Virus record (IMG/VR): IMGVR_UViG_3300020477_001008
Location: 62,001 to 126,000 of that record
DNA: 64,000 nucleotides
Direction: 5' to 3' (one strand)
Both the position numbers and the translations under genes were made by a program. Shown piece by piece: positions 3,001 through 47,274 of this stretch. Numbering within the stretch: the first letter of the stretch is position 1; the number at the start of each line of letters is the position of its first letter. A model generated the notes under the pieces. That model saw nothing but the letters and a program-made list of their open reading frames with translations, did not search any database and was not told the origin of the DNA.

Positions 3001-6000
3001 TTTCCAATATCATATCCGTGTACAGACCAACCTCTAGCAGTTTTTTCAATTATAATAGCTGAGTAAGTTGCATTTTGTACTGACGGAGAAATATGTAATA
3101 AGTGATTAATATTTGTATCAGGTATGTATATGCTTGTTCTTTTTGAAGTTGGAGAATATGCTTCAGCCTGGCATTTATAAGAACCAAAGTCAATAAACGC
3201 ACCTTGTTTGTGTGCTAACTGTGGAGTAATATTTCTTATTACACCACCATACAAAATATCTGGTTTTTTATTTTGATTAATTAATCTTTCACTAATATAT
3301 TGTTGATAACCTGTACCAACAGCTATTGAAGTATTAGCTGTTTCTCTGTGAACATATACATTATTTGTATGACGCTTACCTGTATTTTTATCAAATTTTT
3401 GTAATTTGTTTATATTACTATTATCAATGTTTAATGTATCAAACATTAATTCAGTAAATTGTGTTGGCTTCATTACAAATAAAGCAGACATTAATGCAAA
3501 TGGCATAGTACTACTCATATAGAATGCTTTTTCCGCCGGTGCAATATCTCCTATTGACCAATGAAAATGTGCTTCTACTCTATTTGGCTCTCTGCTACAT
3601 AAACCAATATCTTTTGGACTTTGTAAATCACCCTGGAAGTCTACTGGTAGATATGTACTAAAACCATCTCTTCTGTATATGTTTGCTCTTTTTGTGTAAG
3701 ATAAATCTTTAAAGTTTTCTCTTCTACCATAACGTATAATTCCATTTTCAACGTCTGAAATTAATTTATTTCTTTTATCTGTTTCAGTCCAAGAATATGT
3801 ATCGTCCCACCAAGTTGGTTTAATACTAAAACCTAACATTTCCCAAGGTGTTAAATGTGGTCTATCAGTACCGTAGAATTTTTTATAAATTCCTCTCCAG
3901 TGACCAGGTGTAGCTGTATCTTTAATATTTGTAATTGATTTCCAGTTCCAAGTTCTCCAATCTGTTTCACTAACAAGTACCGGATGATTTTTCTGCCAAT
4001 TAACATCATTGAAAGTCATCCAACGATAAATGTGTGCTCTAAAGATTTGATTAAATTCTAAATATGAATAATCTTTTGTATTAAAATAATTACTAACTAA
4101 TGATTCATATGATAAAGGCGCCGTGTAATCTGGATCAATAAATTTATTTTCAATATCATTAAATATTCTTTTCTCAAGTTCTAATAATGCTCTATCTCTA
4201 TCATCATAAAATTTTAAATTTAATGAACCATCGTGTCCTTGAATAAATGTTTGTTCACCTTTATTAAAAGAATCTTTATCAACTATTTCACTAGGTATAA
4301 ACGTTTGGTATATACCAAGTTTTGATGGAGTAGGCGGAATAAACACAGGTTGCTTTTTATCAAAAAAGTCAACTCTAACTTTGTCACCTACTTCTGGTTT
4401 ATTATCTCCAATAAACACAATTCTATTATCTGTTGCATTAGTAATTACATAATCTTGATTCATTACTAAAAGCTTATCGTTATTATAAACATATAAAGAT
4501 TTTGAATCTTTATCATTTACAGGACTATATGCGTATGATGTTACTAATCCACCAGCTGACGAATCAGTTAAAACATTTTGATAATCTTGTATAGCCCAGT
4601 TTTTAGTATCTGATGACCAAGTTTTATTTGCTGTTGTTATTGTTGTAGTATTAGTTTGTTTTGCATCACCATATGAAAGCATTAAACTATAAGCCCAATT
4701 TTCATTTGGTTTTTTATTTTGATTAATTTCTGCTAAAGCTGTATCAACAAGTTTAGTATCTGTCCAAGATGTTACATCATTTCTTCTTGCTACATCTAAA
4801 ATTTTATTTAAAAATTTATACTTGAACCTTACGTAATCAGTTTCAGCTAATCTTAATGATTTAATAATATCTCTATCATCACTATTAACGTGTGATGCTA
4901 ATTTTAAGAAAGGTGCATCGTGTTGCAATATATTTTCACTTAATGTTAAATCTTGTTCTGTGTCTCTGTAGTTGTTATTTCCTAACGCCAATCCAGTTAG
5001 ACCTTTTTGATTTGCAACACCGCCTGAGAAGTGATTTAATAAATCTCCATAATCATATGTTACTACATCAGAGTTTAATGCATTATTAGTTAAATTTTTT
5101 GGTACTTCATAATAAGCTTTATATAAATCTCTTGTATCAAAGCTTTTAAATTTAACTAAAATATGATCAGTATCAATTGCTGGTGTTGTTAATTTAATAA
5201 ACTGATTTTTTTGAATTTCATAATCTGTACCTTGTAATTTTTCTTTATTATTAATAAAAACACGTACAGTATCGTCACCTGCAATAATAGATTCAAGTAA
5301 AAATAGTTCGTTGCTTACTTCATCGGCAACATCAAATTCTTGAACTAAACATTGTTTTGATTTTGTACTAACAGCCGCCCATTCGTTATTGTGTGTAGTA
5401 ACTGTACCATCAGTTAAATTGGTTACATTATTATTAACAATTCTTATACTACCACCCATACCACTATGATTTTTACAATAGTAATATAATTGATCTGGAG
5501 TACCTGCTGTAGGTGTAAACTCAATTTTCCTTTTTGTTACAGTTGCGTTATCAAATGTTGCACTATGATATACTGCTTCTGTTACTTCAATATCATTATG
5601 AAAATACTTAATGCCAGTATTATAAGAAACGCCACTTGCGTGTGATCCATTTTCAGTAATACTCATTAAGAACGGATGATAAGCATCTGAATATCCTCTA
5701 GAAGTAACTGAACTGTCATCTATATCAAAGATATATTTGTTACCTCTAATTAATATTAAATTTTGTTGTTCAATATTATCAATATAAAATTTGTTGCCTG
5801 TAGTTCCACTTGCTTTTTGTACAATTATTTTGTATTCAAATGTATCTTGCAATATATTTTTATAATCATATTTTTTATAATATTTGAAACCAGCTGGGCC
5901 ATTAGTTTCACTGTTTAAATAATTCTTAAATTGTATTGTACTTAAACTTGTATAATCTGTGTATGTTAATGGAAAGCCTAAATGTGTGTCGTTAGTTCCA

Positions 6001-7874
6001 GTACCAACTGTATAACCAAAAATTTCATTTCCTGTAAATGTTGATGAACTGTAAACACTAGTATTTCCTAAATCAATACCATTTGTATCATATAAATTAA
6101 ATTTAGGTGATTTGTTTATTCCTGTTTTTTGTTGTCCTAATTTCCATTCGTAACCAGTCCAGTAATATTCTTTACCTCCATTACTACCACCAAGTCTTAT
6201 AGTAACTTTATCATTGTCTTTTATTTTAAGTTCTGTTCCAGCATAATAAGTTGAGTCATCTAATGCTCTTAATTTAATTACACCACCTACAAATTTTACT
6301 TCATAAATTGATGACGACGCATCAAATGTACTAGACTTAACGTCCCAACCAGTGTCAGGAGTACCGTCACCGTCCTTATCGTAGTCCCAAGGATCAGTAT
6401 TTGCATCCCAGGTAACTAAATCTGTTTGCGAATTTGGATTTACAAATAAAACTTTATAACCTTCTACTAATAATATATCATCAACTCTATATGATGCTTG
6501 ATCTTCTATATCACTAATAGTTGCTGTTGATTCAAGAACATCAACAGTAGTAACGTGTTCAGAACCATAATTGTATAATTCAATATCTTTATTAAATTCA
6601 ATAATTGGTCTTTGACCTTTTCTAGCTTGTTCTAATTGAAATGATGTTTCTCTTAAGAGTGTAGTTGAATCAAAATATCCACCATCCCAGCCTCTAATAG
6701 CATCTGTTATAGAATCAAATGGATGAAACTCAGGAACTTCTTCTTGATAAGTTCTGTAATTTGTAATATTGTCTTTATGCACCCAGCCGTTTGTTCTTGA
6801 CCAAGGATTTTTATCTTTGCAACCTCTATTGATTGTAATATAATCTGCTGTAGCTACATCAGGTATAGTATCGTAACGTTCACTATCAAAACCTTTAGTA
6901 GTATCTGTTTGTGCTATTGTATCTGCTCTGTCCCAAGGTATAAATGTTTCTTTCAAAAACAATTCAGTTTCAACATCTGATGTTTCAACTAATGATATAC
7001 CTTCTTTTGAACCAACACTTTCTACAAAAACTTTTTTATCTTTATAAGTTGTACCAACTAGTGAAGAATCACTAAATTGTATTAACATACCAGAGCTGAG
7101 TGTTACACCATTGGGAGAAGTATAAGATTTTGAACCAATAATATTGTTAGGATCAACTCTATGATTGACAGTTATTTTATCTCCAGTAACAACGTTAATT
7201 GAACTGGTGGCAAATGATAAATTTAAACCTGTGGACTCATAATCGGCTGTTGCGACCCCATTAACTTCTACTATGTCATTGGGAGCGATTGAGTATGTTA
7301 ACACGAACGTTTTTGAGTTTGCAACTGACTCAAACGATTCAACCAAACCTCCTATAACAATAGCAGGTACGTTTAAATCTAAACTTGGATACCAATAGTA
7401 ATTTTCATAATTTATAAACTTATCATAATCTATTGGTGCGGAAAATGTATAATGCTTTTGTTCAAATAATCTATTTTGATCAATTGTTTTACCATTTTCA
7501 CTATCTATATAATTTAATATTTCACTATAAAAAACAGAATCTCTTAAATTTTTACTATCTGGATCTTTAATGATTCCAGCTGTTTCTAATTGATACGTTT
7601 TTCTATTTTTAATTGTTTCTGTTTTATAATTGTCTTTAGCTGGTCTATAAAATACATCAGATTTCCTACCAATGTATTCTGTAACTCTAGTATCATTTGC
7701 TTTACTAAAAGCTTGTTCAACTGTACCATCAAAGAAGTTTTTTAACTTTTCGTTTTGTAAAATTTCAGGTAAGAAACTTATAGCCTTAGCTTTATCGTCA
7801 GTTGTTGAAACTGAATTGCTAACACTTGAATTTGCATTAGATGAATTGAATTTTATTTCATCATCATAAGCCAT
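1..7874 (-). CDS. Giant baseplate wedge/structural protein (T4 gp7-like position), >2600 aa, runs off the left edge of the window
   Basis: ATG at 7874 just after the gp6-like stop reads MAYDDEIKFNSS...ISFLPEILQNEKLKNFFDGTVEQAFSK. The same frame reads ...HPLYTYKDVRLATRNNGIDT at positions 62-3. The ORF track lists no terminated minus-strand ORF here, consistent with one open frame to the edge. Gly/Thr-rich beta repeats near 600-1200. Confidence 0.8.
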   Translation of the reverse strand, partial: MAYDDEIKFNSSNANSSVSNSVSTTDDKAKAISFLPEILQNEKLKNFFDGTVEQAFSKANDTRVTEYIGRKSDVFYRPAKDNYKTETIKNRKTYQLETAGIIKDPDSKNLRDSVFYSEILNYIDSENGKTIDQNRLFEQKHYTFSAPIDYDKFINYENYYWYPSLDLNVPAIVIGGLVESFESVANSKTFVLTYSIAPNDIVEVNGVATADYESTGLNLSFATSSINVVTGDKITVNHRVDPNNIIGSKSYTSPNGVTLSSGMLIQFSDSSLVGTTYKDKKVFVESVGSKEGISLVETSDVETELFLKETFIPWDRADTIAQTDTTKGFDSERYDTIPDVATADYITINRGCKDKNPWSRTNGWVHKDNITNYRTYQEEVPEFHPFDSITDAIRGWDGGYFDSTTLLRETSFQLEQARKGQRPIIEFNKDIELYNYGSEHVTTVDVLESTATISDIEDQASYRVDDILLVEGYKVLFVNPNSQTDLVTWDANTDPWDYDKDGDGTPDTGWDVKSSTFDASSSIYEVKFVGGVIKLRALDDSTYYAGTELKIKDNDKVTIRLGGSNGGKEYYWTGYEWKLGQQKTGINKSPKFNLYDTNGIDLGNTSVYSSSTFTGNEIFGYTVGTGTNDTHLGFPLTYTDYTSLSTIQFKNYLNSETNGPAGFKYYKKYDYKNILQDTFEYKIIVQKASGTTGNKFYIDNIEQQNLILIRGNKYIFDIDDSSVTSRGYSDAYHPFLMSITENGSHASGVSYNTGIKYFHNDIEVTEAVYHSATFDNATVTKRKIEFTPTAGTPDQLYYYCKNHSGMGGSIRIVNNNVTNLTDGTVTTHNNEWAAVSTKSKQCLVQEFDVADEVSNELFLLESIIAGDDTVRVFINNKEKLQGTDYEIQKNQFIKLTTPAIDTDHILVKFKSFDTRDLYKAYYEVPKNLTNNALNSDVVTYDYGDLLNHFSGGVANQKGLTGLALGNNNYRDTEQDLTLSENILQHDAPFLKLASHVNSDDRDIIKSLRLAETDYVRFKYKFLNKILDVARRNDVTSWTDTKLVDTALAEINQNKKPNENWAYSLMLSYGDAKQTNTTTITTANKTWSSDTKNWAIQDYQNVLTDSSAGGLVTSYAYSPVNDKDSKSLYVYNNDKLLVMNQDYVITNATDNRIVFIGDNKPEVGDKVRVDFFDKKQPVFIPPTPSKLGIYQTFIPSEIVDKDSFNKGEQTFIQGHDGSLNLKFYDDRDRALLELEKRIFNDIENKFIDPDYTAPLSYESLVSNYFNTKDYSYLEFNQIFRAHIYRWMTFNDVNWQKNHPVLVSETDWRTWNWKSITNIKDTATPGHWRGIYKKFYGTDRPHLTPWEMLGFSIKPTWWDDTYSWTETDKRNKLISDVENGIIRYGRRENFKDLSYTKRANIYRRDGFSTYLPVDFQGDLQSPKDIGLCSREPNRVEAHFHWSIGDIAPAEKAFYMSSTMPFALMSALFVMKPTQFTELMFDTLNIDNSNINKLQKFDKNTGKRHTNNVYVHRETANTSIAVGTGYQQYISERLINQNKKPDILYGGVIRNITPQLAHKQGAFIDFGSYKCQAEAYSPTSKRTSIYIPDTNINHLLHISPSVQNATYSAIIIEKTARGWSVHGYDIGKNYFRTNVSLETGPSVPVQVGGKYLDIPYYQPNQSLVLGDYILYEGTYYKVKEAHTTGNSFDPTKFLSVAKPPMEGGASVTYYRASKENETVDVEYGKEFTTKQEVFDFIVNYGRYLESQGWIFDSINTDIQETYNWLYSAKEFLFWSLGNWPAESILAVSPAANKVKFKPLNGVVASVEDVIGSSYSILDKDGKPIDPSTTTIIRDGSTVKITSDEKRPIYFVNVYAREIEHITIFDNVTTFKDVIYDPALSIRQPRLKQTLLRTNDWNGKLEANGYLINTEKGIISNFETAASDVTTYLDIDKTTNNEQLNKAGLHTIGFQNRESLENLEIVDESQTRFYQGFVRQKGSRNSVDKILRTDIINERQEINLYEYYAFKVGEFGGTEINQSMEFRLDPTKIKTNPQVVKFLPRIDNVVTTDIITDDIITIDADDSLNWTKKPTGSKVSDVIWPTRAESFDLPTAGYVHINDTNFQALEKANLKTQYGNTVASNTDVAIGSTTWVAKDDNGDWNVYRLTDTNHGIESVITTNPLTVSMNETAGKLVTTANATFEAVLPDHKNADASTITTTTYGTKTFQLSLTDQVIEKTINFTDFGGANANVSVANVADGVSAMVVTTAGSGYSVGDTIEADGNGGTSASGTVATINGSGGITSITLTNPGGAYYGEPGNVSIKTGGSDSAGSSAVIRFKGNNPTYQINTTLSNASTPFQYGETITQANTGATGKVINVYTDGTSTILHIYDHTNTFDTTNQITGGTGGASTTGSHTVTARSGSAYGDSTFGAILNLTINKGGSNYVSPTMTISGTSPATGVVSASSGVINKAYVENGSYGYRKEFSDNPTIGIVVKDTITDSDNKYVDFTDQLIKPDSIANVQIVINTAFDGSNPQFDIGTTATPNSLLSNQSLSTNAVATSFGTPITDRANATLRIRFATTGSTTGTAKISVNYKKAIYNVFDLPENDVVAATTVSAYSSTFFNGSNKHPLYTYKDVRLATRNNGIDT

Positions 7875-7877
7875 TTA

Positions 7878-10800
7878 TTAATTTCCCCCAGTTGATCTTA
7901 AATTTGCACCTGTTAATCCTGAAACAATCTCAACATCATCTACTGATGCAGTTGAAAAGAACAATTCATTACTTGCGGCTTTAATTTGGAATAAGTCTCC
8001 AAATTTAGCTTCAGCATCTTTTGGTACAATAACAACTGAAGAAATTTGTGTTGATAATTGTCTGTGGATGTATGCGGCTAATTCACTGTAATAAAAAGTA
8101 TCTCCAAAATCCCAATTTGTAATTCTAAAGTAAGAACTAATTGCTTTTACCACTTCAGTTTTTACTTGGTTATCCGTATAACTTGAACCTGGCATTTTAA
8201 CTACTCTAAATATAGCTTGATTTACTTCATCGGCTGTAGTACCAAATAATAATTTAAATGAAGCAGATGTATAAACTAATTGATCACTAATTGATTTATA
8301 TTTTTCTAATTCTGTTAAATTATTTTTAATTTCTTGAGATGTTGGTGCTAGTGGAAAATTAGATAACGTTCCACCTGCAGAATGCCAATTTATTACATTT
8401 GTATAGTATTCTGTTTGTAATACTATTAATTCCATAATATTTGATACACTAGGATCAATTCTTTGATCTCTTGGTGCAGAATGTCTATATTGGAAATAGA
8501 ATTTGTTTGTAGTGTTAAATGCTCTACCAATAAATGATTTGTAAATTGTAGTTCCGCTTACTCCATATCTTGTTGTATATGAACTAGCAGTACCATTTGT
8601 TAATTTAGTACCATTCAAGTAAAAGAAGTTATCACTAGTTAAGTATTCTAATCCACTATTTGTTAATGATGAAACAGCTGAAACACCTGTTGTTGTTTTG
8701 TAATATGTGTAACCATCATAATCATCATAACTTATAAAGAATATATTATTTGTATTATTAATAACATTTTCGTGAGCAATAGGATTATCAGGCATACCAT
8801 CATTGTCTGTATCCATATTTGTAAGTTTTATTTTTTTAGTATCAACAAAACCATCTGCTTCAACGTAACTATCACTAACACTAAAAGTTATTTTTTCTGT
8901 TAGTTTAGTTGTACTTGATGGGTTGCTTAATACAGCAACGTCTTTGTTAATATCTAAAAGTTCAATAGTATCTTTAACAGCTTTTCCAGTTGCACTATCA
9001 ATATTTTTATATTCAGGAACATAATAGAATCTAACTTCTTGGTCACTTTCAAATACATAATCTAATCCTCTAATTTTAAATTCATATTTTGGATTACTTG
9101 CCGAGTCAGCCGCCGGTATATAATTTGCGTGAATCAACCAAGATGTGTCAGCCGCCAATGTAGTTGCACCACCGTGTGATTGATTTTTTGTTATACCAAA
9201 ATCGTTAGTAAGGTCAATATAGTCTTCACTAATTAGATACCATTTTTCTGCTTTTGTACTTGCATCTCTATAATGATAACCAATACCAAAATCAACACCT
9301 TTTTCCATTTCTGTTTGTATTAAAGATGTTTCTGAAGTGTTTAATTTTGTTCTTAAGTTTGGAAGAATTTTTCTTACTTTTAAACCTGCTGTAATTGATT
9401 GATCTAAAACAATTGATCCAGTTGTTTCATTAGATAATACTGTACCATCATTGCTTATGCTTACCACAGTAGCCCAAGTAGTTGTAGTTGGTGTAGTATA
9501 ATCATCAACAAATTCTAGTTTAGTACCTGGTCTAATAAAACCAAGTTTCTCATCTGAGCCATTTGGATTATTATAAACTGTAATTAATTGTGCTTCATTT
9601 GGTCTACCTGTATTTGTAATTGGAGTATTACCAATATAAAAGAAACCTGTACTTGATTTTCCTGCTACAGCAAACGGTTGCCATAAAATTTTCTGCGCCG
9701 CTAAATTCATTATAAACTGATTTGCATCGTGTCCAGATTCAATAGCTGTTTTATACGTGTCAAAATAAAAATTCTGTAATTGTATTTTTTTTATTAATGG
9801 TGCTAGTACATTATCAATAATATATGTATAACTTGTTGTATCAACAATAGTACCTGTAATTTCCTCTGTACTTAAAGTAAAGTTTGGATTTTTGTATAGT
9901 ACACCATCTTCACCAAATACGTTTACACTTTTAACTGTACCAGTAGGATCATTTATATCAATATATCTTGAATGACCTATATGAGTTTTATTCAATGCTT
10001 TCATTTTTTGAATCGTAGTTGATTGTGTTAATGGAAAAATATTATAGTCTTCTGCATTAACCATTCTATCTTGTGTGTAAAAAGATTTTGGTGCATTGTT
10101 TTTAATATCTGTATCGGTTTCAGCCGCTTGTGAATTTGATACTGTACTTGATAAAGTTAAAGATATAGTTGCAGTATATTCTTGTCCAATAGAGTTTTTA
10201 TATTTGACTGCTATTTCTTTATTTTTAATTCTATCTTTTTTAAGTACTTGACCTTGTCCATTACTTGTTCTGTAATAAATTCTAAAACTTCCTTTTGGTG
10301 CATTACCAAAATTACCATCACTAAACAATACTGATACTTGGTCACTGTTTCTAGATTGTACAGCATATATGTTTCTTGTGTTTAATGCTAAACTATTATA
10401 AATTGTATTTTGACCAAATAACCCTGGCACAGATTGCCATTTCTCTGTAGGTACACCATTTGTATTAATTTTTTGCACCCAAACATCTGTATCATTTACA
10501 TCTGCTACATCTATATCAACTACTCTGTTTGGTAATGGATTTGAAAATGTATAATCTTGGAAACCTAATTCACCTTCTTTAAAATACATAAAGAATCCTG
10601 TGTCAACACTATTAAATCCTTGATTATCATTTCTGTATATAAAGTTAAAAGCTTCAGTCATATCTGGTGCTGTTTCATACAAGTATCCACTTTTATGAAT
10701 ATCTGCTTTTACAACATCAATTGATGTATTAACACCGTCAATTGTTTCTGAAAAGTTTTTAACAGCTGACTGTGTGCTTGTAGAATTTAAACTATAAATT

Positions 10801-11354
10801 TCAGTTTTAATAGAATTTAATGTAGCTGATTTATTTGGCGTACCAAATTTGTTAGTTGAATTGAAAATTGAATTACAAATTGTTAACCATTGATCATACC
10901 AATCAGCATTGTTTATATCATTCCAATTAACATAAGCATTAGTAAGTTCATTTCCTGAAGAATCTTGTAATGGTTCATTTGTTTTAATTTTTGTAATTTT
11001 TAAAAGACCTCTTGCTGGTACATTTCTTTTTGGTCTATAGTTAATTAATTTTGTTAATCTAATAATTGAATCTCTTCTTTCAGCAGTATCTAAAAAGTTT
11101 TCTCTAGAATTTAAATCTGTTCTAAAAGCTAAACTCTGTCCTAAGAAAGCAAGTAAGTCTATGATAGCAATAAATTCACTTGATGCAATATAGTCATTAA
11201 AATCTTCTGGATAATTTATTTGAATATAATTTAACATTGAGTTACGAATTGAATCGTAATCATATGCTTTGAAATCTGCTTGTGAAAATGTTCTGTAGAT
11301 TGTTTGCCAATCTTCTGCTGAAAATAAATTGTTCTGTCTAACTATCTGACTCAT
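7878..11354 (-). CDS. Baseplate wedge protein, T4 gp6-like
   Basis: N-terminal YDYDSIRNSMLNYI...PEDFNDY..SSEFIAIIDLLAFLG, FSDGNFGNAP and RMVNAEDY motifs of the gp6/baseplate J family; adjacent to gp25. Confidence 0.85.
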   Translation of the reverse strand: MSQIVRQNNLFSAEDWQTIYRTFSQADFKAYDYDSIRNSMLNYIQINYPEDFNDYIASSEFIAIIDLLAFLGQSLAFRTDLNSRENFLDTAERRDSIIRLTKLINYRPKRNVPARGLLKITKIKTNEPLQDSSGNELTNAYVNWNDINNADWYDQWLTICNSIFNSTNKFGTPNKSATLNSIKTEIYSLNSTSTQSAVKNFSETIDGVNTSIDVVKADIHKSGYLYETAPDMTEAFNFIYRNDNQGFNSVDTGFFMYFKEGELGFQDYTFSNPLPNRVVDIDVADVNDTDVWVQKINTNGVPTEKWQSVPGLFGQNTIYNSLALNTRNIYAVQSRNSDQVSVLFSDGNFGNAPKGSFRIYYRTSNGQGQVLKKDRIKNKEIAVKYKNSIGQEYTATISLTLSSTVSNSQAAETDTDIKNNAPKSFYTQDRMVNAEDYNIFPLTQSTTIQKMKALNKTHIGHSRYIDINDPTGTVKSVNVFGEDGVLYKNPNFTLSTEEITGTIVDTTSYTYIIDNVLAPLIKKIQLQNFYFDTYKTAIESGHDANQFIMNLAAQKILWQPFAVAGKSSTGFFYIGNTPITNTGRPNEAQLITVYNNPNGSDEKLGFIRPGTKLEFVDDYTTPTTTTWATVVSISNDGTVLSNETTGSIVLDQSITAGLKVRKILPNLRTKLNTSETSLIQTEMEKGVDFGIGYHYRDASTKAEKWYLISEDYIDLTNDFGITKNQSHGGATTLAADTSWLIHANYIPAADSASNPKYEFKIRGLDYVFESDQEVRFYYVPEYKNIDSATGKAVKDTIELLDINKDVAVLSNPSSTTKLTEKITFSVSDSYVEADGFVDTKKIKLTNMDTDNDGMPDNPIAHENVINNTNNIFFISYDDYDGYTYYKTTTGVSAVSSLTNSGLEYLTSDNFFYLNGTKLTNGTASSYTTRYGVSGTTIYKSFIGRAFNTTNKFYFQYRHSAPRDQRIDPSVSNIMELIVLQTEYYTNVINWHSAGGTLSNFPLAPTSQEIKNNLTELEKYKSISDQLVYTSASFKLLFGTTADEVNQAIFRVVKMPGSSYTDNQVKTEVVKAISSYFRITNWDFGDTFYYSELAAYIHRQLSTQISSVVIVPKDAEAKFGDLFQIKAASNELFFSTASVDDVEIVSGLTGANLRSTGGN

Positions 11355-13803: not shown

Positions 13804-13831
13804 AAAGGCGGCTTTCGGGTCGCCTTTTTTT
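13804..13831 (+). terminator. Rho-independent terminator
   Basis: AAAGGCGGCT-TTCG-GGTCGCC followed by a T-run. Confidence 0.8.
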
Positions 13832-13850
13832 GTGGCCATTAAATAGTAGT

Positions 13851-15056
13851 ATGAGCAGTAAAAAACCGTTGGTGTGCCAACTTGGTATGGCTGGAGTTAA
13901 TTTCAAACATAACAGAGTTGATCTTTGTTATAGGTCAACAAGTGGTACAACTAAAAAACATACAAGTATTGTAGATGCAATCAATGACGAAGAACTTTGT
14001 TCTCAAAGATTGCAATTGTTAAATGGTGACTGGCCAACAGCTTGTTATGATTGTGAGTATATGGAAAAATCTGGTGCTAACAGTTATAGGCAAAGAATAA
14101 AGCTCGATGAACAAAAACCAGATAGTTATTTTACAGATAATATAGATCCCAAAACAGGTAAAATTAAAAATCTTAAAAGAATAGAATTTAGATTTGATAA
14201 TGTTTGCAACTATGCTTGTAGGCATTGTTCAGCAGAATATAGTTCAACTTTAGAAAAAATTATAAAACAAAATCCAGATTTATTAGAGTTTGACGAAACA
14301 GATTTACATAAATTAGGACCAAGTTATGCTACTAGATTAGAAAATTTAAATGAAATAGAACAATTTATAAAAGATGATACAATTGAAATAGAAATTACAG
14401 GTGGAGAACCTTTTTTCCAAAATAGCTTTTATAATTGTTTAGAAAAACTTCAACCATTTGCTGACCGTATAAATTTTATTGTAACAACAAATGGAAGTAT
14501 AGCAGGTAAGTTTAAAAAATATGATGTTAAAGGATTACTTAAAAATTTCAAAGAAGTATATCTAAAAGTCAGTTTAGATGGATCAAAATCTTTTTATAAT
14601 TATTTTAGAGAAGGTGGCAATTGGGATACAGTAATAGCAAATATAAAATCTTTTAGAGAACTACCAAATGTTAGGATAGGTCCAATAGTAACTATATCTA
14701 ATATGCAGGCGGCTAGATTACCTGAAGTATATAAAGATTATTTTGAACTTGATCCTAATCCAAGAAACTTTGAAGCTGGGGAAGTTATTCATCCTAATAT
14801 GTTAAATCCTGTGCATTTACCAAATGCACTTAAACAACGATACCTTAAAGAATGGTTAGAGTTTAGGAATAGTTTAACTGATACAGAACACGCAGATCGT
14901 ATAGCCAATTTTGCAGTTCATATGTTTAAAACAGAACAACGTGATGAACTTGCTTGGAAACAATTTTGTTCTTATACAGATAAACTAGATAGAGTTCATA
15001 ACAAAAAAGTTTTTGATTATTTTCCTGAATGGGAAGAATTTTGGTATAAGTCTTAA
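13851..15056 (+). CDS. Radical SAM protein with an extra N-terminal Cys cluster (twitch/SPASM-like)
   Basis: CNYACRHC (CxxxCxxC), TGGEPF, TTNGS, VSLDG; N-terminal C..C..CxxC; probable start ATG 13851, 5 nt after TAAATA. Confidence 0.85.
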   Translation: MSSKKPLVCQLGMAGVNFKHNRVDLCYRSTSGTTKKHTSIVDAINDEELCSQRLQLLNGDWPTACYDCEYMEKSGANSYRQRIKLDEQKPDSYFTDNIDPKTGKIKNLKRIEFRFDNVCNYACRHCSAEYSSTLEKIIKQNPDLLEFDETDLHKLGPSYATRLENLNEIEQFIKDDTIEIEITGGEPFFQNSFYNCLEKLQPFADRINFIVTTNGSIAGKFKKYDVKGLLKNFKEVYLKVSLDGSKSFYNYFREGGNWDTVIANIKSFRELPNVRIGPIVTISNMQAARLPEVYKDYFELDPNPRNFEAGEVIHPNMLNPVHLPNALKQRYLKEWLEFRNSLTDTEHADRIANFAVHMFKTEQRDELAWKQFCSYTDKLDRVHNKKVFDYFPEWEEFWYKS

Positions 15057-31475: not shown

Positions 31476-32609
31476 TTATGTTTGAATATGTAAGTTGGGA
31501 TCACCACTTTGTTTTTGTATTACAGTATTAGACGACTTCCATTTACCATTTTCACAACTTCTCCAACATCTACGTAACTCACGTTTTTTTGTAGTCCACG
31601 CATCAGTAATTTCTTTCCAAGCTGGCTGGTGCCAAATTTCCATTAATGAACGTGTATTAAAGTTGTTAAAATCGTTTTTGTAATGTTCTACTAGCCATTC
31701 TTCTTTTCTTGCTAATTGATGTATTGATAAATCATATTCCTCTGACAAATAACAACAAGGCCATATTCTACCTTTAGGATTCAAATACATTCTATGGTCG
31801 TCAATACCTCTGCAAGAAATACAAGTTTCTTCTTTTACTTTTAGTTGTTTAAAAACTTCTTTTTTAATCTCTTCAGTTTTCTTTGTTTTTATTTCTTCAA
31901 CTTCTTTAACTCTTTCAATTCTTTTTTCAGGTTTTTTCTTTGCAACTTTTACAGCTTCTTGATAATCTTCTTCTGGTGGTGGCTCTCTAGTTGTAACTTC
32001 AGCTGAAAAATGTGCAAATCCTAATTTTCTTGATAAGGCTTCTGCTTCTTCTACTTGGTGTTCGTTGTGATCAAATATTAACATTTTCCACTCAGCTAAT
32101 CCGCCAGCATTAATATAAGCTTCAACGTTTTGAATTAATTTGTCCCAATCAACTTTTCTTCTATATAAATGATTAGTATCTTTTAATCCATCAATAGAGA
32201 AAGTTATACGTGTTGATCCTATATCCCAATTTGATGATCCTTTGCGTTTAGATGTTTCTCCTAGATTACGCCAAAAGTCAGTTGTACGTCCTCCACCATT
32301 AGTATGAACTCCAACGTTCTTGAAATTTTCTGATGCATATTGATATAAAAATTCAAATTCAGGGTGCATTAAAGAATCGCCATAATTTCCACAGTACCAA
32401 ACATTGACTTTATCAGCTCCTTGAAATAAATCAAACTGTTCTTTCATTTTTTCTAATAAATGAGTAGGTAAATGTTCTAAAGCTAGATCTTCTATAACGT
32501 CACTTGTACCTGGCTTATGTCTAGAGCAATACGGACACCCTGCGTTACAAAAGGTCGTAGGCTCTACCTCAATCGTATGTATATGCTGTGGTTTAATTAA
32601 TGAAAACAT
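31476..32609 (-). CDS. Radical SAM protein with C-terminal SPASM/twitch domain
   Basis: CNAGCPYC, GNYGD, HTNGG, FSIDG; C-terminal C...G.IWPCC...CWRSC. Confidence 0.88.
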   Translation of the reverse strand: MFSLIKPQHIHTIEVEPTTFCNAGCPYCSRHKPGTSDVIEDLALEHLPTHLLEKMKEQFDLFQGADKVNVWYCGNYGDSLMHPEFEFLYQYASENFKNVGVHTNGGGRTTDFWRNLGETSKRKGSSNWDIGSTRITFSIDGLKDTNHLYRRKVDWDKLIQNVEAYINAGGLAEWKMLIFDHNEHQVEEAEALSRKLGFAHFSAEVTTREPPPEEDYQEAVKVAKKKPEKRIERVKEVEEIKTKKTEEIKKEVFKQLKVKEETCISCRGIDDHRMYLNPKGRIWPCCYLSEEYDLSIHQLARKEEWLVEHYKNDFNNFNTRSLMEIWHQPAWKEITDAWTTKKRELRRCWRSCENGKWKSSNTVIQKQSGDPNLHIQT

Positions 32610-37974: not shown

Positions 37975-38706
37975 TTAAGATTTGGCCCACTCTCTTTCCA
38001 AACACCACCAACATTTACCGCAACTTTGTTCAAGAATTGATTGATCACCTTCACAACTACGAGTAGTATTCCACAGGCCTACTATCTTGTAGTGCTTGTA
38101 TGAGCCCCATATCCATTTTTTATCCACAGATATCATTGGTGTATAATAATAAGTGTCATTAGCAAACCATTTGTTTGCATCATTGTCAGTATCTTGTAGT
38201 TTTTCCATAACAGGAGCGTCTTTATTTCTTTGATAAGTTATTATTTCACTCATAGAAAAAGGTAAACCTTCAGAATTAGTTGTTTGTCCTTCTTTCCAGT
38301 ATGGTGTAAGTTGATCTTCAGGTGGCCAACTAGTTCTACCTGATATAAACAAAGTAGGTTTATGAAGTAATGCTATTGCTTTCATATGTTTATACATCGA
38401 TGAAGTAATTGTTGCTTTTTGTCGAAATGTACACCAACTATAATCGTGATCAAATTTTGTATAATCAAAAATCCAATTTATTACTTTTAATGCGTGATAG
38501 AAGTTAAAATAATTTTTTGTTCTTCCAGAACTAGTATAGATTATAACTTTAAATTTATTATTTGTTTGTTTTTGATGTTGTAATATTTTCCATAACAATA
38601 ATGCACTATCGGCCCCGCCACTGCAACTAACACATATAGTTTTATGTTCTTCAGATATCTGAAGTTCAATACTTTTATCATTATGCGTACTTTTTATAGC
38701 AACCAT
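37975..38706 (-). CDS. QueC-like PP-loop ATPase
   Basis: SCSGGADSALL PP-loop; TRSCEG...CGKCWWCLER zinc site; probable start MVAIK 5 nt after TAAATA. Confidence 0.75.
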   Translation of the reverse strand: MVAIKSTHNDKSIELQISEEHKTICVSCSGGADSALLLWKILQHQKQTNNKFKVIIYTSSGRTKNYFNFYHALKVINWIFDYTKFDHDYSWCTFRQKATITSSMYKHMKAIALLHKPTLFISGRTSWPPEDQLTPYWKEGQTTNSEGLPFSMSEIITYQRNKDAPVMEKLQDTDNDANKWFANDTYYYTPMISVDKKWIWGSYKHYKIVGLWNTTRSCEGDQSILEQSCGKCWWCLEREWAKS

Positions 38707-38795
38707 ACAGCTATTTAACAAATTTGTAACAAATTTTAATAGTAATTCTTATACTAATAGGTTGAAATTTATTGGAAAGTATTATAATATAAATT

Positions 38796-42068: not shown

Positions 42069-42578
42069 ATGAGTGGTACTAAATCAAAAAACAAAGGTAA
42101 ATCATACGAACGTGATATTGCGAATTTTTTAAGTGAACTTTATCAAGAGTCATTTACAAGAGTTCCACATTCAGGTGCGTTTATTGGCGGACAAAATTTT
42201 TCTAGGATTGATACTTTATCTGAAAATCAAACTAGAGGATTTAAAGGCGATATTATTCCACCTGATACTTTTCAGTTATTAGTTATTGAAGCAAAAAATT
42301 ATGGAGAGTTTAGATGGAATCAATTAGCCCTCGGCCAAGAAGTAAAACAATTAGACGAATGGATTAAACAAGCACAAGACAGTTGTGAGCCTCAAGATAA
42401 ATGGTTACTATGTGTTAAGATATCAAGACAAGGTGAATTTGTTTTATGGGATCCAAAGCTTTGGAAAGATTTACAATATAGATTACCATACAGAGATTAT
42501 CATTATGTAGATTATAAAACTTTTTGGGAAGTTAACAAAAACGAAATACAAAAGCAAAGTAAAAAAGAAATTGTATAA
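42069..42578 (+). CDS. Holliday junction resolvase-like PD-(D/E)xK nuclease
   Basis: SKNKGKSYER.IA..L, RVPHSGA, GDI, IEAK. Confidence 0.75.
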   Translation: MSGTKSKNKGKSYERDIANFLSELYQESFTRVPHSGAFIGGQNFSRIDTLSENQTRGFKGDIIPPDTFQLLVIEAKNYGEFRWNQLALGQEVKQLDEWIKQAQDSCEPQDKWLLCVKISRQGEFVLWDPKLWKDLQYRLPYRDYHYVDYKTFWEVNKNEIQKQSKKEIV

Positions 42579-43849
42579 TGATATCATTTACATTAATAGT
42601 TTTAAAAGATCCTAATTTATTACAATCTATAAATGATTATACTTCACAAAAAATTTCTTGGCCGGCTGAATTAAAAGTTAAAGAATATGATTCAGCTTGG
42701 TTTTCTTCTAAAGTTCATACAGATAAAAATATTGAAGGAATAATAAAAGCTTATCCTGTAAAAGAATGTAATTGGGAAGAATTAAAAGAAACATTAAACA
42801 AAGTACAATCTTCTCACGCACTAGTTGTTAAAGAAGGAAATATTGTAGATGTTGATTTGTTTCCTGATTTTATTTTCAACACAATTGGTACAGATGATAT
42901 AGTAGATTATTCTTTAATAGGACACATATTAGATAAAAAAGAAAGATATTATAATTTACACAATCAAATGTTTTTAATAAATGTAGATCATTGGAAACAA
43001 GTTGGCTCACCTACATTTGATAGAGCTAAAAATATAGAATTACAAAACGTTAATAGGTCTACTGATAATTTTCACGATGATTATACACCAACATCAATTA
43101 CAAAAGGCGAAGGAAAGCATACATATACAAATAATACAGCACAAGGATCACAAGTTATTAGTGCATTATTAGAAAACAATTATAAAGTTAGACCTTTTCA
43201 AGAACAAGAAAGACATAAAAAAACTTGTTGCTATGATAATATTGATAATCAAGTATCAACAATTTTTAACTTTTTAGATAAGCCTACAACTCAATCTCAT
43301 AATATTGTTTATATAAATTCAACTTCTGCAAGACCAAAAGAATTTACAAATAATAATGATACAATAATTAGTGTAGCATCTCCAGTAACTTTATTATCTC
43401 GTATAAAAAACAAGTATAAAAATATTAGTAAAATAATTTTTTATGATATATCGTTACCAGCATTGATTTGGACTGAATTGTTTTTTAAAAATATAAAAAA
43501 TTATGATTATGAAGTAGAAAAATTATTTGAACTTTATAGAAGTTATGGTGGAGAAAAATTTGTACTTGATGCACATTTAGAATTTGAACATTACAAATAT
43601 AATGTTAAAGAATATTCAACATTATTAGAACATTTATCTACTTGCGATATTCAGTATCGTTATGGAGATATAACTAGGCCATCAATTTATAATAAAGAAA
43701 ACGTTGGAAATTCAAATAGTATAGGTGTTAATTTTACAAACGTTTGGGATTATCAAAGAAATATTTTGCGTAAAGATGATTTTGTTTGGTTTAGAGATGA
43801 ATATATTCCTGTAATTGAAAAAAAATATAAGTTTGAATATTTAGATTAA
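42578..43849 (+). CDS. Hypothetical protein, possibly glycosyltransferase-like N-terminus plus Rossmann-like C-terminus
   Basis: 423-aa ORF; GHILD...LHNQ.FLIN...FHDDYTP; C-terminal IFYDIS and GDI..NFTNVW. Confidence 0.45.
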   Translation: MISFTLIVLKDPNLLQSINDYTSQKISWPAELKVKEYDSAWFSSKVHTDKNIEGIIKAYPVKECNWEELKETLNKVQSSHALVVKEGNIVDVDLFPDFIFNTIGTDDIVDYSLIGHILDKKERYYNLHNQMFLINVDHWKQVGSPTFDRAKNIELQNVNRSTDNFHDDYTPTSITKGEGKHTYTNNTAQGSQVISALLENNYKVRPFQEQERHKKTCCYDNIDNQVSTIFNFLDKPTTQSHNIVYINSTSARPKEFTNNNDTIISVASPVTLLSRIKNKYKNISKIIFYDISLPALIWTELFFKNIKNYDYEVEKLFELYRSYGGEKFVLDAHLEFEHYKYNVKEYSTLLEHLSTCDIQYRYGDITRPSIYNKENVGNSNSIGVNFTNVWDYQRNILRKDDFVWFRDEYIPVIEKKYKFEYLD

Positions 43850-44076
43850 ACTACAGGCGTCATTGAGCCTTTAAATCTTTCCATATTTTCTTTTAAGAAA
43901 TCTTGTATATCTTTATTGTCTTCCCAAGTAAGATCATATGCTTCTGCCATAGTAATACTTCCACGCATATACCAGCAAATTTCAATAATGCCTTTTCTGA
44001 TTTGTTTTTGTTCTGAAGCTAAAGTACCAAAGTATTCACCTATCTCAGACGGCGAGTGTGTTATTAAGTACTGACG
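43846..44076 (-). CDS. -1 frame extension of the gp26-like chaperone (gp51/GT-like domain)
   Basis: 76-codon open frame RQYLITHSPSEIGEYF...ICWYMRGSITMAEAYDLTWED...VV* starting at the T TTT TTC heptamer; no ATG until about halfway. Confidence 0.65.
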   Translation of the reverse strand, partial: RQYLITHSPSEIGEYFGTLASEQKQIRKGIIEICWYMRGSITMAEAYDLTWEDNKDIQDFLKENMERFKGSMTPVV

Positions 44077-44918
44077 AAAAAATCCGACGGATCCAACCTT
44101 ACTTCAGACTCAAATTCACTACCTGTTTCTTTACATTTAAATTTTCTCTTAACAGTAGTAGAAGCTTTATTCAAACTTTCAATTAATAAATCTACTTTTC
44201 TATGATCAGTACTTTCAATACTATCCATAAAATCTTTGATCTGTTTCTTGTTAACAACTGATGTTCCGTCTGGCGTTGTAATTTTATCTACTGATTGAAC
44301 TAATACGTCCATATTAGTATCAGCTAGTTGAGTGAAAAGAGCTGTAAACTGTTTAGCTGATTCACTTGTTAAGTCATTTACATTTCTTAATGCTTTTGCT
44401 TGATCATAAGCCATTAAATTTAATCTTGTTTGTATTGTATAGCTAAAAGGTTTGACATATATACTACAACCATTTTTAAGTACTACTGAGTTTTCTGCTG
44501 GTAGCGGTTTAACATCTTCAATAATTCCTTCTAAATTAATATCATAATCTTCTTCTTTTTTCTCACCATATGGTGATTTTAATTTAGTTTGAAGTATAGA
44601 ACCGTGTGTAGCCATTCTTACAGCTATTAATAAAATATCAACGTCACAAACTGGTAAGTTTCTTACATCCATTACATCAGGTACACAGCTTTTTAATACT
44701 TTCATAACAGCATCACCATTTAATAGTGCATCTGGGTTTCGCATTATGATTTCATCTTTGGCCGTCATAGCATATACTGGTATTTCTCCATTAGCGGCTT
44801 TCTCGCCAATATCGTTAAATCTACCACCAGATGGCAAAGTTACATATAGCTTTGGAGCTCTATAAAACTTTTTTAATGGATTTTCTTCTTTATTTTGTAC
44901 AGTTTCTTCTGTTGTCAT
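44064..44918 (-). CDS. Baseplate hub assembly/tail chaperone, gp26-like
   Basis: NPLKKFYR.PKLYVTLPSGG, MTAKDEI...PDALLNG, AVRMATHG, C-terminal DPSDFF; adjacent to tape measure. Confidence 0.75.
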   Translation of the reverse strand: MTTEETVQNKEENPLKKFYRAPKLYVTLPSGGRFNDIGEKAANGEIPVYAMTAKDEIIMRNPDALLNGDAVMKVLKSCVPDVMDVRNLPVCDVDILLIAVRMATHGSILQTKLKSPYGEKKEEDYDINLEGIIEDVKPLPAENSVVLKNGCSIYVKPFSYTIQTRLNLMAYDQAKALRNVNDLTSESAKQFTALFTQLADTNMDVLVQSVDKITTPDGTSVVNKKQIKDFMDSIESTDHRKVDLLIESLNKASTTVKRKFKCKETGSEFESEVRLDPSDFFVST

Positions 44919-45027: not shown

Positions 45028-47274
45028 ATGGCAGAGAAGATAACAATAGAATTTGGCGGTGAAAGAATAGAAATACCTGAGTTCGCTATGGACTCAACGG
45101 TAAAATCTCTTCAGAATGTCTTAAAGCAACAAGGCCTCAACCAAGTTAAATCCGCTAAAGAGCAAAAGAAATCCATTGAAACTCTTATGAAAGAGTTAGT
45201 TGGTGTTAATGCTAAACAACATCGAAAGAAAGAATTAGGTGCTCAAGCTGATACTACTGAAGCAGTTAAAAAAGTAGGAAAGAAAATTGAAGAAGCTTCT
45301 AAATCACAAAAAGGTTTATTAAGTAAACTCGGCGGAGGTACGGGAAGTATACTTGGCGGAGTTGTTTCTAAATTTGGTAAGTTTGGTAAAATGCTTAATC
45401 CAATTACAGCTGGGTTATTTGGTTTATTCAATGCTGTAAAATCAGTTACAAGTTTTTTAATGAAAATGGGAAGACTTGAAAATACTTTATTTAGAAGAGG
45501 ATTTAATTTTAGATCTACAGATGGTAGATTAGCAGATGGTATAGCAAACCTAGGTGCTCAGGCCGCCGACGCCGCCTTGAGTATAGACGAAGCTGTAGAA
45601 TTAATAAGTCAGTTTGCAACAGCGGCCGGTGAGTATGGTTCAAAAACAATTCTTGATGCAGTTAAGAATACACAGAATCTTTTAGACTCTCAGGGTTTAT
45701 TAGGTATGAGTAATAATGAAATTGCTCAAGCTACTGCTGAAATGGCAGAACAATTTAGAGGATTAGGTTTTGAGTTAGAAGGTAGTTCAATGTACCTTGC
45801 TCAACAAACTACAAAAGTTTTACAAGTAACACAGGCATTTACAAAATTAACAAATACATCTGCTGAAGTTATTAGACAAATGGTAATGCAGGCAACTACA
45901 ATGGAAGCATTTAGAAATGCTATGCAGATGTTACCACAAGGCGCAAGAGCAGGAGCCACAGAAGCTTCTCAAATAGCATTTGCAGGATTAGGAGCATTTG
46001 GTGAAGAACTTGGTAGTCAACTTACTACTGCATTAAGTGAAGCAATTGGAAGAGGTGGAGTACAGTTTACAGACTTTGGTCAACAACTAGCTGGTGTGTC
46101 ACCTTTACTATTAAATTCTTTACAAGATTTAAGAGATGCGGCAGGCAGAGGAGATAATCAAGGTGTAGTTGGTGCGTTAGAAGATTTTAGATCAAGTGTT
46201 TTAAATGTTAGTGATAATCAAAGACAATTTTTAAGAGCTTTAGAAATTAGTGGCGATCCAATGGCCAAGTTTGTAATTAAACTTGCTAATATGAATGAAA
46301 CAATTGATGATGCAGATTTTCAAAGGTTAGCGGCTACAATGACTTCAGTTTCTGCAGATGACTTAGGTGTAGCTCAAACACAATTAGCATTAGCAATGGC
46401 AAAAGTTAGAGAAGCATTTCAAAAATTACAAATTGCATTTTTAACACCAGAAGTAGTAAAAGCTTTTGAAAGAGGTGTTGATTTAGTTGTTAGTGGTTTA
46501 ACAAAATTTGCAGAATTTTTAAGAGACGATATTTACAGTTATATGAATTCATTTATTAGAGCAATTTCAAGAGGAGTTAAATGGATGGAAAATATGATTT
46601 CTGGTTCTGGAATAGGACAAGCAATTACACATATTACTAGTGCGGCTGTACAAACAATTGGAGCCGCGGCACATAGAATTGTTGCAGAAATGGTTTGGGG
46701 TGGAGATAGTGCTAAAGAACTTGATAAAATGGATGCTCTTAATGCCAAAGTACAAAGTGCTAAAACTAAAGCTGAATATGATAAAGCTTTAGATGACTTG
46801 TACAAATATGTTTTTAAAACATCAACTTTCTTAGGATGGGAAAGTGATGCTGTAGACTTTGGTGATTTAAGAGCTAACAAATATTCAACAATAGAAGACA
46901 AGTCAGCAAGACTAGATTCGAGACTTGGAAAATATGGAGTGAATACTGGTTGGAACCAAGGTGGAACTGGAGATGGACCTTGGACTATGAGAGATGGCGG
47001 AATGGATTCTGGTGCAGAATCTACTAATATGCTAGGAGCTCAACCAAGACGTAGAATATCAATTATGCCAATGTATGGCGATTTAGACGACTATGTTGGC
47101 GCAGATCAATCACCAGAAGTGAAACAATTAATTAGAATCAATAAGAATCTAGAAGCACAATTGGCTGAATTACAGGCACAAACCTCAGCTAATAACCAAG
47201 GATTAAGTTATACTAAAGAGCAAAGAGATGCCTTAAGGGCTCTAAGATCGGATGCCGCTTATTCGGTTGATTAA
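45028..47274 (+). CDS. Tape measure-like protein
   Basis: 748 aa, Ala/Gln/Gly-rich and helical, next to the gp26-like chaperone and portal. Confidence 0.6.
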   Translation: MAEKITIEFGGERIEIPEFAMDSTVKSLQNVLKQQGLNQVKSAKEQKKSIETLMKELVGVNAKQHRKKELGAQADTTEAVKKVGKKIEEASKSQKGLLSKLGGGTGSILGGVVSKFGKFGKMLNPITAGLFGLFNAVKSVTSFLMKMGRLENTLFRRGFNFRSTDGRLADGIANLGAQAADAALSIDEAVELISQFATAAGEYGSKTILDAVKNTQNLLDSQGLLGMSNNEIAQATAEMAEQFRGLGFELEGSSMYLAQQTTKVLQVTQAFTKLTNTSAEVIRQMVMQATTMEAFRNAMQMLPQGARAGATEASQIAFAGLGAFGEELGSQLTTALSEAIGRGGVQFTDFGQQLAGVSPLLLNSLQDLRDAAGRGDNQGVVGALEDFRSSVLNVSDNQRQFLRALEISGDPMAKFVIKLANMNETIDDADFQRLAATMTSVSADDLGVAQTQLALAMAKVREAFQKLQIAFLTPEVVKAFERGVDLVVSGLTKFAEFLRDDIYSYMNSFIRAISRGVKWMENMISGSGIGQAITHITSAAVQTIGAAAHRIVAEMVWGGDSAKELDKMDALNAKVQSAKTKAEYDKALDDLYKYVFKTSTFLGWESDAVDFGDLRANKYSTIEDKSARLDSRLGKYGVNTGWNQGGTGDGPWTMRDGGMDSGAESTNMLGAQPRRRISIMPMYGDLDDYVGADQSPEVKQLIRINKNLEAQLAELQAQTSANNQGLSYTKEQRDALRALRSDAAYSVD

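Follow-up and report, generated by a model that had tools for sequence, protein, structure and literature searches.

A conserved predicted -1 frameshift site in a gp26-type baseplate hub assembly gene of jumbo phages

Background

Programmed -1 frameshifts in tail assembly chaperone genes are a hallmark of long-tailed phages, among them G/GT of phage lambda (Xu, Hendrix and Duda 2004; reviewed in PMC5009743). A slippery heptamer of the form X XXY YYZ lies a few codons before the stop codon of a small assembly gene next to the tape-measure gene, and a major short form and a C-terminally extended minor form are produced. No obvious RNA stimulator is present, and lambda G/GT is reported to need none. 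In contrast, the E. coli dnaX and IS3-family frameshifts, which also use tandem slippage on an X XXY YYZ heptamer, have strong stimulators, either an upstream Shine-Dalgarno-like element or a downstream hairpin or pseudoknot. The heptamer U_UU.U_UU.C is used by some IS elements and is among the efficient -1 heptamers in E. coli (PMC4066793).

To our knowledge, the T4 superfamily has been the conspicuous exception to chaperone frameshifting. T4 encodes two members of the Pfam family PF12322 ("T4_baseplate"), gp26 (E 9e-64) and gp51 (E 4e-52), which are baseplate hub assembly proteins. gp26 is the bare domain and ends with EFFELL, the same Phe-Phe end as in the gene examined here, whereas gp51 is the domain plus a tail of about 48 aa, for which a precomputed family, PF28602, exists. 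In T4, the family is genetically an assembly factor rather than a clear virion component (PMC3004832). Here, we examine a PF12322 gene of a giant marine phage, which appears to provide a comparable short and long pair from a single gene.

A slippery heptamer and an open -1 frame at the end of the gp26-type gene

The window analyzed, a 64,000-nucleotide stretch of the phage record, contains a minus-strand gene at 44064-44918 encoding 284 aa. Its product matches PF12322 with 63.3 bits (cut-off 24.5; E 3.4e-17) over profile positions 9-218 of 219 and PHROG 150 ("baseplate hub"), and it is the only PF12322 match in the phage record. The gene ends GAT TTT TTC GTC AGT ACT TAA. The heptamer T TTT TTC occupies 44082-44076, read on the minus strand, three codons before the zero-frame stop at 44066-44064, and is in register X XXY YYZ with the zero frame. 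From 44076, the -1 frame reads RQYLITHS...WYMRGSITMAEAYDL...PVV for 76 codons up to a TAA stop at 43848-43846. The first ATG, GTG or TTG in this frame is the M of the WYMRG motif at codon 37. The -1 stop overlaps the stop of the convergent gene 42578-43849 by 4 nt, and the extension therefore fills the gap between both genes exactly. The whole span, 43846-44918 on the minus strand, would encode a predicted trans-frame long form of 357 aa, consisting of residues 1-281 of the short form plus 76 residues, with the junction peptide DPSDFFRQYL.

A sequence-only reading had proposed this heptamer, the 76-codon -1 frame without an early ATG that fills the gap, products of 284 and about 357 aa and the same junction peptide; every element of that observation is present in the sequence and is hereby confirmed.

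Conservation of the heptamer and of the -1 frame

The proposal had named two conditions that would count against it, namely a heptamer that is not conserved and a downstream frame with an independent start. Both were tested, and neither refutes the frameshift. Of 80 related IMG/VR loci with 31-78% identity, 79 could be analyzed. The heptamer T TTT TTC is present in 75 of these, one locus has T TTT TTT, and three have T TTT TCC, a change which is silent in the -1 frame. Every complete locus of this set has a -1 ORF of 76-81 codons, and the +1 frame closes within 0-30 codons. The heptamer was also found in eight of eight cultured jumbo phages, i.e., Phosso, Atu_ph07, PA5oct, RaK2, Serratia BF, Vibrio 2.275.O, XaC1 and Munch. 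Across both sets the -1 ORF is always 70-81 codons long and the +1 frame is closed, although the proteins are in part only about 30% identical, and the zero-frame stop is always 1-4 codons after the heptamer. Together, these sequences form 8-10 lineages at 40-50% identity. Given the invariant Phe-Phe, local codon usage predicts T TTT TTC in 6.5% of lineages, yet it is present in all 8-10 deep lineages, which is far beyond chance. The DNA-level search of phage records had detected only a 110-nt patch in PA5oct-like phages, and protein-level searches were needed to find these relatives.

The extension peptides align from their first residue ([RH]xFL..P.EI...), and in most loci the first start codon lies at codon 12-48. 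However, a few loci have TTG or ATG at codons 3-4, and in Phosso and Atu_ph07 an ATG overlapping the zero-frame stop (ATGA) could start the -1 ORF independently. Substitutions fall on codon positions 1, 2 and 3 of the -1 frame at 26, 21 and 53%, respectively, and variant positions in an independent metagenome contig show the same bias, indicating that the -1 frame is coding and under purifying selection. Assembled Logan contigs from other samples, including an independent 2024 study, span the T6 run without an indel, although such contigs cannot measure minor RNA variants or expression.

Single-ORF relatives carry the same tail in frame

A profile of the extension found 589 protein clusters, and in 14 of the top 150 the domain is fused in frame to PF12322. 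Trans-frame protein sequences were constructed from the retrieved loci, without use of an alternative genetic code, and compared with these 14 clusters of 320-351 aa. The alignments run without a gap across the junction (...DPSDFF|RQYL... against ...DWSSSF|RNKIL...). The long forms of these uncultured phages consist of the same domain plus the same helical tail with the WYMRG motif, collinear with the predicted trans-frame product of the window. All four loci of this kind that were inspected (L098-L101) carry a short family member immediately upstream. Here, the two forms come from duplicated genes and not from recoding; some of the short genes still end with T TTT TTC or T TTT TTA, but the -1 frame is closed.

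In T4, two genes and no frameshift are used: the codons are TTC TTT, the -1 frame is closed and gene 25 follows. The complete genomes of PA5oct, RaK2, Atu_ph07 and Phosso have one family member each, whereas T4 has two. A profile alignment of long forms to gp51 runs through the tails up to gp51 residue 247 (E 1.9e-4, probability 47%). However, no comparison of the tails alone reached a convincing score: profile-profile comparison gave E 0.013 against 0.072 for the reversed control, and the extension profile against gp51 as a single sequence gave a probability of 0.2%. The gp51 tail is also shorter than the extension.

Absence of a conserved stimulator

No consensus RNA structure was found in the window clade or in the largest clade, and the median z-score of downstream folds is -0.9. 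Only one sub-clade has a conserved 5-bp hairpin. No Shine-Dalgarno-like 4-mer lies closer than 18 nt upstream of the heptamer, and no minus-strand terminator was detected inside the extension. In contrast to dnaX and the IS3 family, none of the known stimulators is conserved here, and the frameshifting efficiency may therefore be low. Nevertheless, such an element is not obligatory.

Genomic neighborhood and comparison with G/GT

The gene is divergent from a plus-strand neighbor at 45028-47274 encoding 748 aa, which is probably the tail tape-measure protein. It holds the same position as RaK2 ORF088 ("similar to tape measure"), a structural protein of PA5oct detected by mass spectrometry, and virion proteins of BF and XaC1. 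BLASTP to RaK2 ORF088 gave E 2e-4, and an Atlas feature search gave tape-measure clusters at 0.94. On the other hand, there is no Pfam hit, and no significant BLASTP similarity to T4 gp29 or to the Phosso neighbor was found; this assignment is therefore a lead and not proof. The same divergent arrangement holds in RaK2, PA5oct, BF, XaC1 and Phosso. It differs from G/GT, where the gene lies between the tube and tape-measure genes, directly upstream of the latter and co-oriented with it.

As with G/GT, two products sharing an N-terminus are predicted from a slip site near the 3' end of a gene adjacent to the probable tape-measure gene, without an obvious stimulator. However, the protein family differs, PF12322 rather than the known tail assembly chaperone families, to which no Pfam hit was obtained, and with 284 aa the protein is about twice the size of typical G proteins. 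The best fold match, for residues 7-111, is the HK97 chaperone 2ob9, but this single match is weak (Foldseek probability 0.63, E 0.31; VIA Z 6.1, rmsd 8.0 Å over 90 aligned residues). A weak hint regarding virion content is that the PA5oct record marks the neighboring protein, but not the gp26 homolog, as detected by mass spectrometry in virions.

Interpretation

We consider it most likely, with a probability of roughly 0.8, that the gp26-family gene is decoded in two ways. In this view, most ribosomes terminate at the zero-frame TAA and make the 284-aa short form, while a fraction slips back one base on T TTT TTC, the P- and A-site tRNA-Phe re-pairing from TTT TTC to TTT TTT, and continues in the -1 frame to make the 357-aa long form. 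Both forms would be needed, and other lineages of the family would supply them from two genes, as a tandem short and long pair in some uncultured phages and as gp26 and gp51 in T4. By analogy with T4 gp26/gp51 and lambda G/GT, the pair probably acts as assembly chaperones for the hub and tape-measure complex encoded next door; the shared domain would hold the client, and the extra tail of the minor long form would recruit a second partner. The slip signal, its conservation, the coding status of the -1 frame and the continuity of the predicted fused product follow directly from the sequence data. That the fusion protein is made, that slippage is ribosomal rather than transcriptional, the ratio of the two forms, the binding of partners and the chaperone role are inferred, the last by analogy only.

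The interpretation given in the sequence-only reading, a programmed -1 frameshift in a gp26-like tail chaperone, is supported as far as the frameshift is concerned. Its remark on a gp26/gp51-like pair was apt, as gp51 is itself a PF12322 protein with an extra C-terminal tail and T4 has two such genes where the frameshifting phages have one, but equivalence to G/GT remains an inference which rests on analogy, on T4 genetics from the literature and on one weak fold match.

Transcriptional slippage is an unlikely alternative, but cannot be excluded from contigs. RNA polymerase would add one extra U on the T6 run in a minority of mRNAs, giving exactly the same junction and protein. Homopolymeric heptamers are known to cause transcriptional slippage (PMC4066793), and one relative (locus L080) has seven T. 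However, the conserved feature is a heptamer in register with the zero frame and ending in C, not a long run. Known bacterial slippage sites usually comprise 8-9 or more identical bases. Selection for slippage should lengthen the run, but 75 of 79 analyzable loci keep exactly T6C, and the T TTT TCC variants shorten the run to five yet keep the -1 ORF. The one RNA-library contig across the site has no extra T, which is weak evidence as contigs drop minor variants.

Less likely still, the -1 ORF could be a separate gene for a peptide of about 8 kDa, translated by re-initiation or coupling without any fused protein. The ATGA overlaps in Phosso and Atu_ph07 and the early TTG or ATG codons of a few loci would fit, and gene callers and GenBank annotators call short separate ORFs here. 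In the window and most loci, however, initiation at the first available start codon would delete the conserved N-terminal third of the domain. Further, peptide conservation begins at the first codon after the slip site, the almost invariant heptamer would be unexplained, and single-ORF homologs carry the domain fused in frame. Homopolymer runs are error-prone, but a sequencing or assembly error in the run, or decay of a longer gene such as the in-frame forms of other lineages, is very unlikely, since the same arrangement occurs without an indel in 80 independent metagenome contigs, eight cultured phage genomes and contigs from other samples, and the -1 frame is under purifying selection.

A more far-reaching hypothesis, which we regard as tentative and somewhat less likely than not, is that the short and long pair of PF12322 proteins is an ancient, obligatory two-form assembly chaperone of the T4 superfamily and the functional counterpart of G/GT, produced by frameshifting in the jumbo branch (RaK2, PA5oct, Atu_ph07 and marine relatives) and by gene duplication in T4. 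This offers a concrete, testable hypothesis for the old question of what gp26 and gp51 do in hub assembly, i.e., that they are the short and long forms of one chaperone. The same need for two protein forms would then be met by recoding in one lineage and by gene duplication in others.

While -1 frameshifting near tape-measure genes is known, no public record that we inspected annotates this frameshift in the gp26 family, and full-text literature searches, which did not cover subscription journals and thus cannot exclude a prior description, found no report of it. Recognition of the site corrects hundreds of phage genomes, in which the extension is either missed or called as a small "hypothetical protein", including those of the cultured model jumbo phages RaK2 and PA5oct. 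The site also offers a natural U UUU UUC frameshift without an obvious stimulator for mechanistic study.

Predicted structure and further sequence features

The extension had no Pfam hit, only a PHROG hit at E 0.03, no PDB sequence hit and no Foldseek hit at E <= 0.001. A search of the whole gp26-like model against 48,161 PDB representatives gave only generic helical-hairpin matches to residues 157-213 at Z about 7, which we do not take as meaningful. The AF2 model of the extension (pLDDT 83) shows four helices, and it is thus predicted to be a small four-helix C-terminal domain of unknown fold relationship. Finally, two CxxC pairs, a zinc-ribbon-like motif, are seen in most PF12322 members, but the window clade has SPY/SPH in place of the first CPxC and only one Cys in the second pair. 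This is a lineage-specific loss and not a bar to membership in the family.

Genomic Context and the Probable Frameshift Site

The window derives from a 242.6-kb viral record, which is about 55% complete according to CheckV's estimate and represents a marine, AT-rich jumbo myophage of the T4 superfamily. Nearby genes encode the portal gp20 (PF07230), a prohead protease, the major head protein, a gp15-like sheath stabilizer, a gp5-like hub/lysozyme and gp46/47-like nucleases. Two very large ORFs on the minus strand, 3-7874 (more than 2624 aa, running off the window) and 7878-11354 (1158 aa), may encode giant structural or fiber proteins. In addition, two radical-SAM-like proteins and a QueC-like protein (13830-15056 on the plus strand, 31476-32609 and 37975-38721 on the minus strand) lie among a block of minus-strand ORFs and hint at a nucleoside or DNA modification (7-deazaguanine-type) or another auxiliary metabolic module.

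On the minus strand, 44064-44918 encodes a 284-aa protein, which matches Pfam PF12322 “T4_baseplate” over essentially the whole profile (E 3.4e-17) and PHROG 150 “baseplate hub.” The gene ends with GAT TTT TTC GTC AGT ACT TAA, and the heptamer T TTT TTC (44082-44076) is in X XXY YYZ register. From 44076 onward, the -1 frame is open for 76 codons up to the TAA at 43848-43846, and no ATG, GTG or TTG is found before codon 37. This stop overlaps by 4 nt (43846-43849) with the stop of the convergent plus-strand gene 42578-43849 (423 aa, no family hit), as the stop codons share TTAA, leaving no room for a terminator in between. The sequence-only reading had proposed a probable programmed -1 frameshift here, with products of 284 and about 357 aa and the junction peptide DPSDFFRQYL; its observation proved accurate in coordinates, product sizes and junction peptide. 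Its interpretation as a -1 frameshift is supported by the comparisons below, but the equivalence to the lambda G/GT pair remains an inference.

Conservation of the Slippery Heptamer and the -1 Frame

Related sequences were searched in order to examine whether the heptamer is conserved and whether the downstream frame has its own start, the two points on which the proposal could have failed. A tblastn search with the 76-aa extension found it only directly after the gp26 homologs of Sinorhizobium phage Phosso and Agrobacterium phage Atu_ph07, again in the -1 frame, where the DNA reads CAT TTT TTC GAA TGA and CAT TTT TTC GCA TGA, respectively. A profile scan of IMG/VR returned 530 relatives, of which the best 80 (31–78% identity) were analyzed. 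Of these, 79 could be analyzed at the site: 75 have T TTT TTC, one has T TTT TTT, and three (L046, L052, and L053 in our numbering of IMG/VR loci) have T TTT TCC. The latter variant changes Phe to Ser in the zero frame, but is silent in the -1 frame, leaves the -1 ORF intact and still retains a U_UU.U tetramer. This suggests stronger selection on the trans-frame product than on the last residues of the short form, and possible slippage on the tetramer. In a further IMG/VR locus, L075, the zero-frame stop after the heptamer is mutated (TAG to TCG), so that the short form is 8 residues longer, while heptamer and -1 ORF are unchanged. Every complete locus has a -1 ORF of 76–81 codons, whereas the +1 frame closes after 0–30 codons.

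Six further cultured jumbo phages, namely PA5oct, RaK2, Serratia BF, Vibrio 2.275.O, Xanthomonas XaC1 and Salmonella Munch, show the same heptamer and a -1 ORF of 70–76 codons. None of the eight cultured phage records annotates a frameshift; the extension is either left blank or called as a shorter separate “hypothetical protein.” In the GenBank records of Serratia BF, Vibrio 2.275.O, XaC1, Munch, Phosso and Atu_ph07, this is a protein of 40–76 aa representing an internally started piece of the -1 extension. The frameshifting genes fall into 10 single-linkage groups at 50% identity and 8 at 40%. Given the invariant Phe-Phe, the codon usage of the genes predicts T TTT TTC in 6.5% of lineages; the observed conservation is therefore selective.

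The extension peptides align end to end and are conserved from the very first residues ([RH]xFL..P.EI...E...Y..G..S..EAW.LS..ER), although most loci have no start codon until codon 12–48. Among 17 unique sequences of the window's clade, differences fall 26/21/53% on positions 1/2/3 of the -1 frame. Of 15 differences listed within the extension for a divergent contig from an independent 2024 seawater study, 13 lie at third positions of that frame. These results indicate that the -1 frame is coding, starting at the slip site. Two contigs from other samples (X5 record 6 and X7 record 14) span the heptamer with no indel, as does a metatranscriptome contig, though the latter extends only 26 nt past the site. 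The T6 run is therefore real.

Continuity of the Predicted Fused Product

Since a word search and family scans left the extension domain unexplained, an hmmsearch with the extension profile was conducted against 1.84 billion representative proteins and gave 589 hits. Most of these are peptides of 40–100 aa, i.e., miscalled pieces of the -1 ORF. However, 14 of the top 150 are single ORFs of 320–351 aa, in which a PF12322-type domain is followed in frame by the same tail. The trans-frame products, constructed computationally from the retrieved loci, align to these without any gap at the junction (...LDPSDFF|RQYLITH.SPSEI... against ...LDWSSSF|RNKILTQ.TPEEI...). The junction DNA of three of the four in-frame genes inspected is not a T run; the fourth (P0274, locus L101) has TTT TTT there, but in frame. 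These are natural fusions. All four loci carry a second, short family member immediately upstream, with the endings ...SFFND, ...NFLPDNQ and ...DFLSKGD before the stop codon. These lineages therefore supply a short and a long form from two genes. At two such tandem loci (L098:1686-1704 and L101:205-232), the short gene still ends with T TTT TTC or T TTT TTA, but the -1 frame closes at once, which may be a relic of an ancestral frameshift site.

Relationship to T4 gp26 and gp51

T4 gp26 (208 aa) is the bare PF12322 domain and ends with ...EFFELL. Its Phe-Phe is encoded by TTC TTT, the -1 frame closes at once and gene 25 follows; thus, T4 has no frameshift. T4 gp51 (249 aa) is also a PF12322 protein, residues 1–201 covering the whole profile (E 3.9e-52), followed by a tail of about 48 aa, which precomputed annotations place in Pfam PF28602. 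T4 has two PF12322 genes, while the complete genomes of PA5oct, RaK2, Atu_ph07 and Phosso, as well as the window's own record, have one each. A profile of long forms aligns to a gp51 profile from the domain through the tail to gp51 residue 247 (E 1.9e-4, probability 47%), matching F-[KR]-x-L...P-[DES]-E-I after the junction and ...[ML]-x-P/S-x-E-R....K.L near the end. However, when the tails are compared alone, they score only E 0.013 against 0.072 for a reversed control. Homology of the tails is suggested by these data, but not shown.

Predicted Mechanism

The heptamer U_UU.U_UU.C is among the efficient -1 heptamers in E. coli and is used by IS elements (PMC4066793). No conserved downstream structure and no SD-like element closer than 18 nt upstream of the heptamer were found; only one sub-clade has a conserved 5-bp hairpin 6 nt downstream. 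The zero-frame stop always lies 1–4 codons after the heptamer, and exactly 3 codons in 64 of 80 loci. This resembles lambda G/GT, which reportedly needs no stimulator. A minor long form is the likely outcome, although the efficiency cannot be predicted. Transcriptional slippage on the T6 run would give the same protein; it is disfavored by the strict register and the short run, but it is not excluded. We consider it very likely that a 357-aa trans-frame product is made by a -1 shift at this site, and assign a probability of about 0.8 to ribosomal frameshifting specifically. While the heptamer, its conservation, the coding signature of the -1 frame and the gap-free match to in-frame homologs were observed directly, synthesis of the long form, its ribosomal origin, any binding to a tape-measure protein and a chaperone role are inferred.

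Frameshifting of the -1 type is already known from phage tail-assembly genes, but is not known to have been recognized in this family and superfamily. Full-text literature searches found no description of the frameshift reported here, and the PA5oct omics paper does not mention one. The finding bears directly on the roles of T4 gp26 and gp51.

Possible Function

In the T4 literature, gp26 and gp51 are listed as hub assembly chaperones, gp51 being essential, of unknown function and absent from virions (PMC3004832). The divergent neighbor of the window's gene (748 aa) occupies the position of RaK2 ORF088 (“similar to tape measure”) and of virion structural proteins in PA5oct, BF and XaC1. It is weakly similar to RaK2 ORF088 (E 2e-4) and has tape-measure-like language-model features (0.94). 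The G/GT analogy therefore fits the logic, the neighborhood and the T4 genetics, but it remains an inference, and a G/GT-like chaperone role is proposed only tentatively.

The AF2 model of the short form (pLDDT 83) gave one suggestive match, of residues 7–111 to the HK97 tail assembly chaperone 2ob9 (Foldseek probability 0.63, E 0.31; VIA Z 6.1, rmsd 8.0 Å, 90 residues), which is too weak to claim membership. The extension is predicted to fold as four helices (pLDDT 83), and no structural relatives were found for it. Within the short form, the window's clade has lost both CxxC pairs (a zinc-ribbon-like motif; residues about 112–122 and 259–268) that most family members, including T4 gp26 and gp51, keep: in the alignment, SPY/SPH replaces the first CPxC, and a single Cys remains in the second pair.
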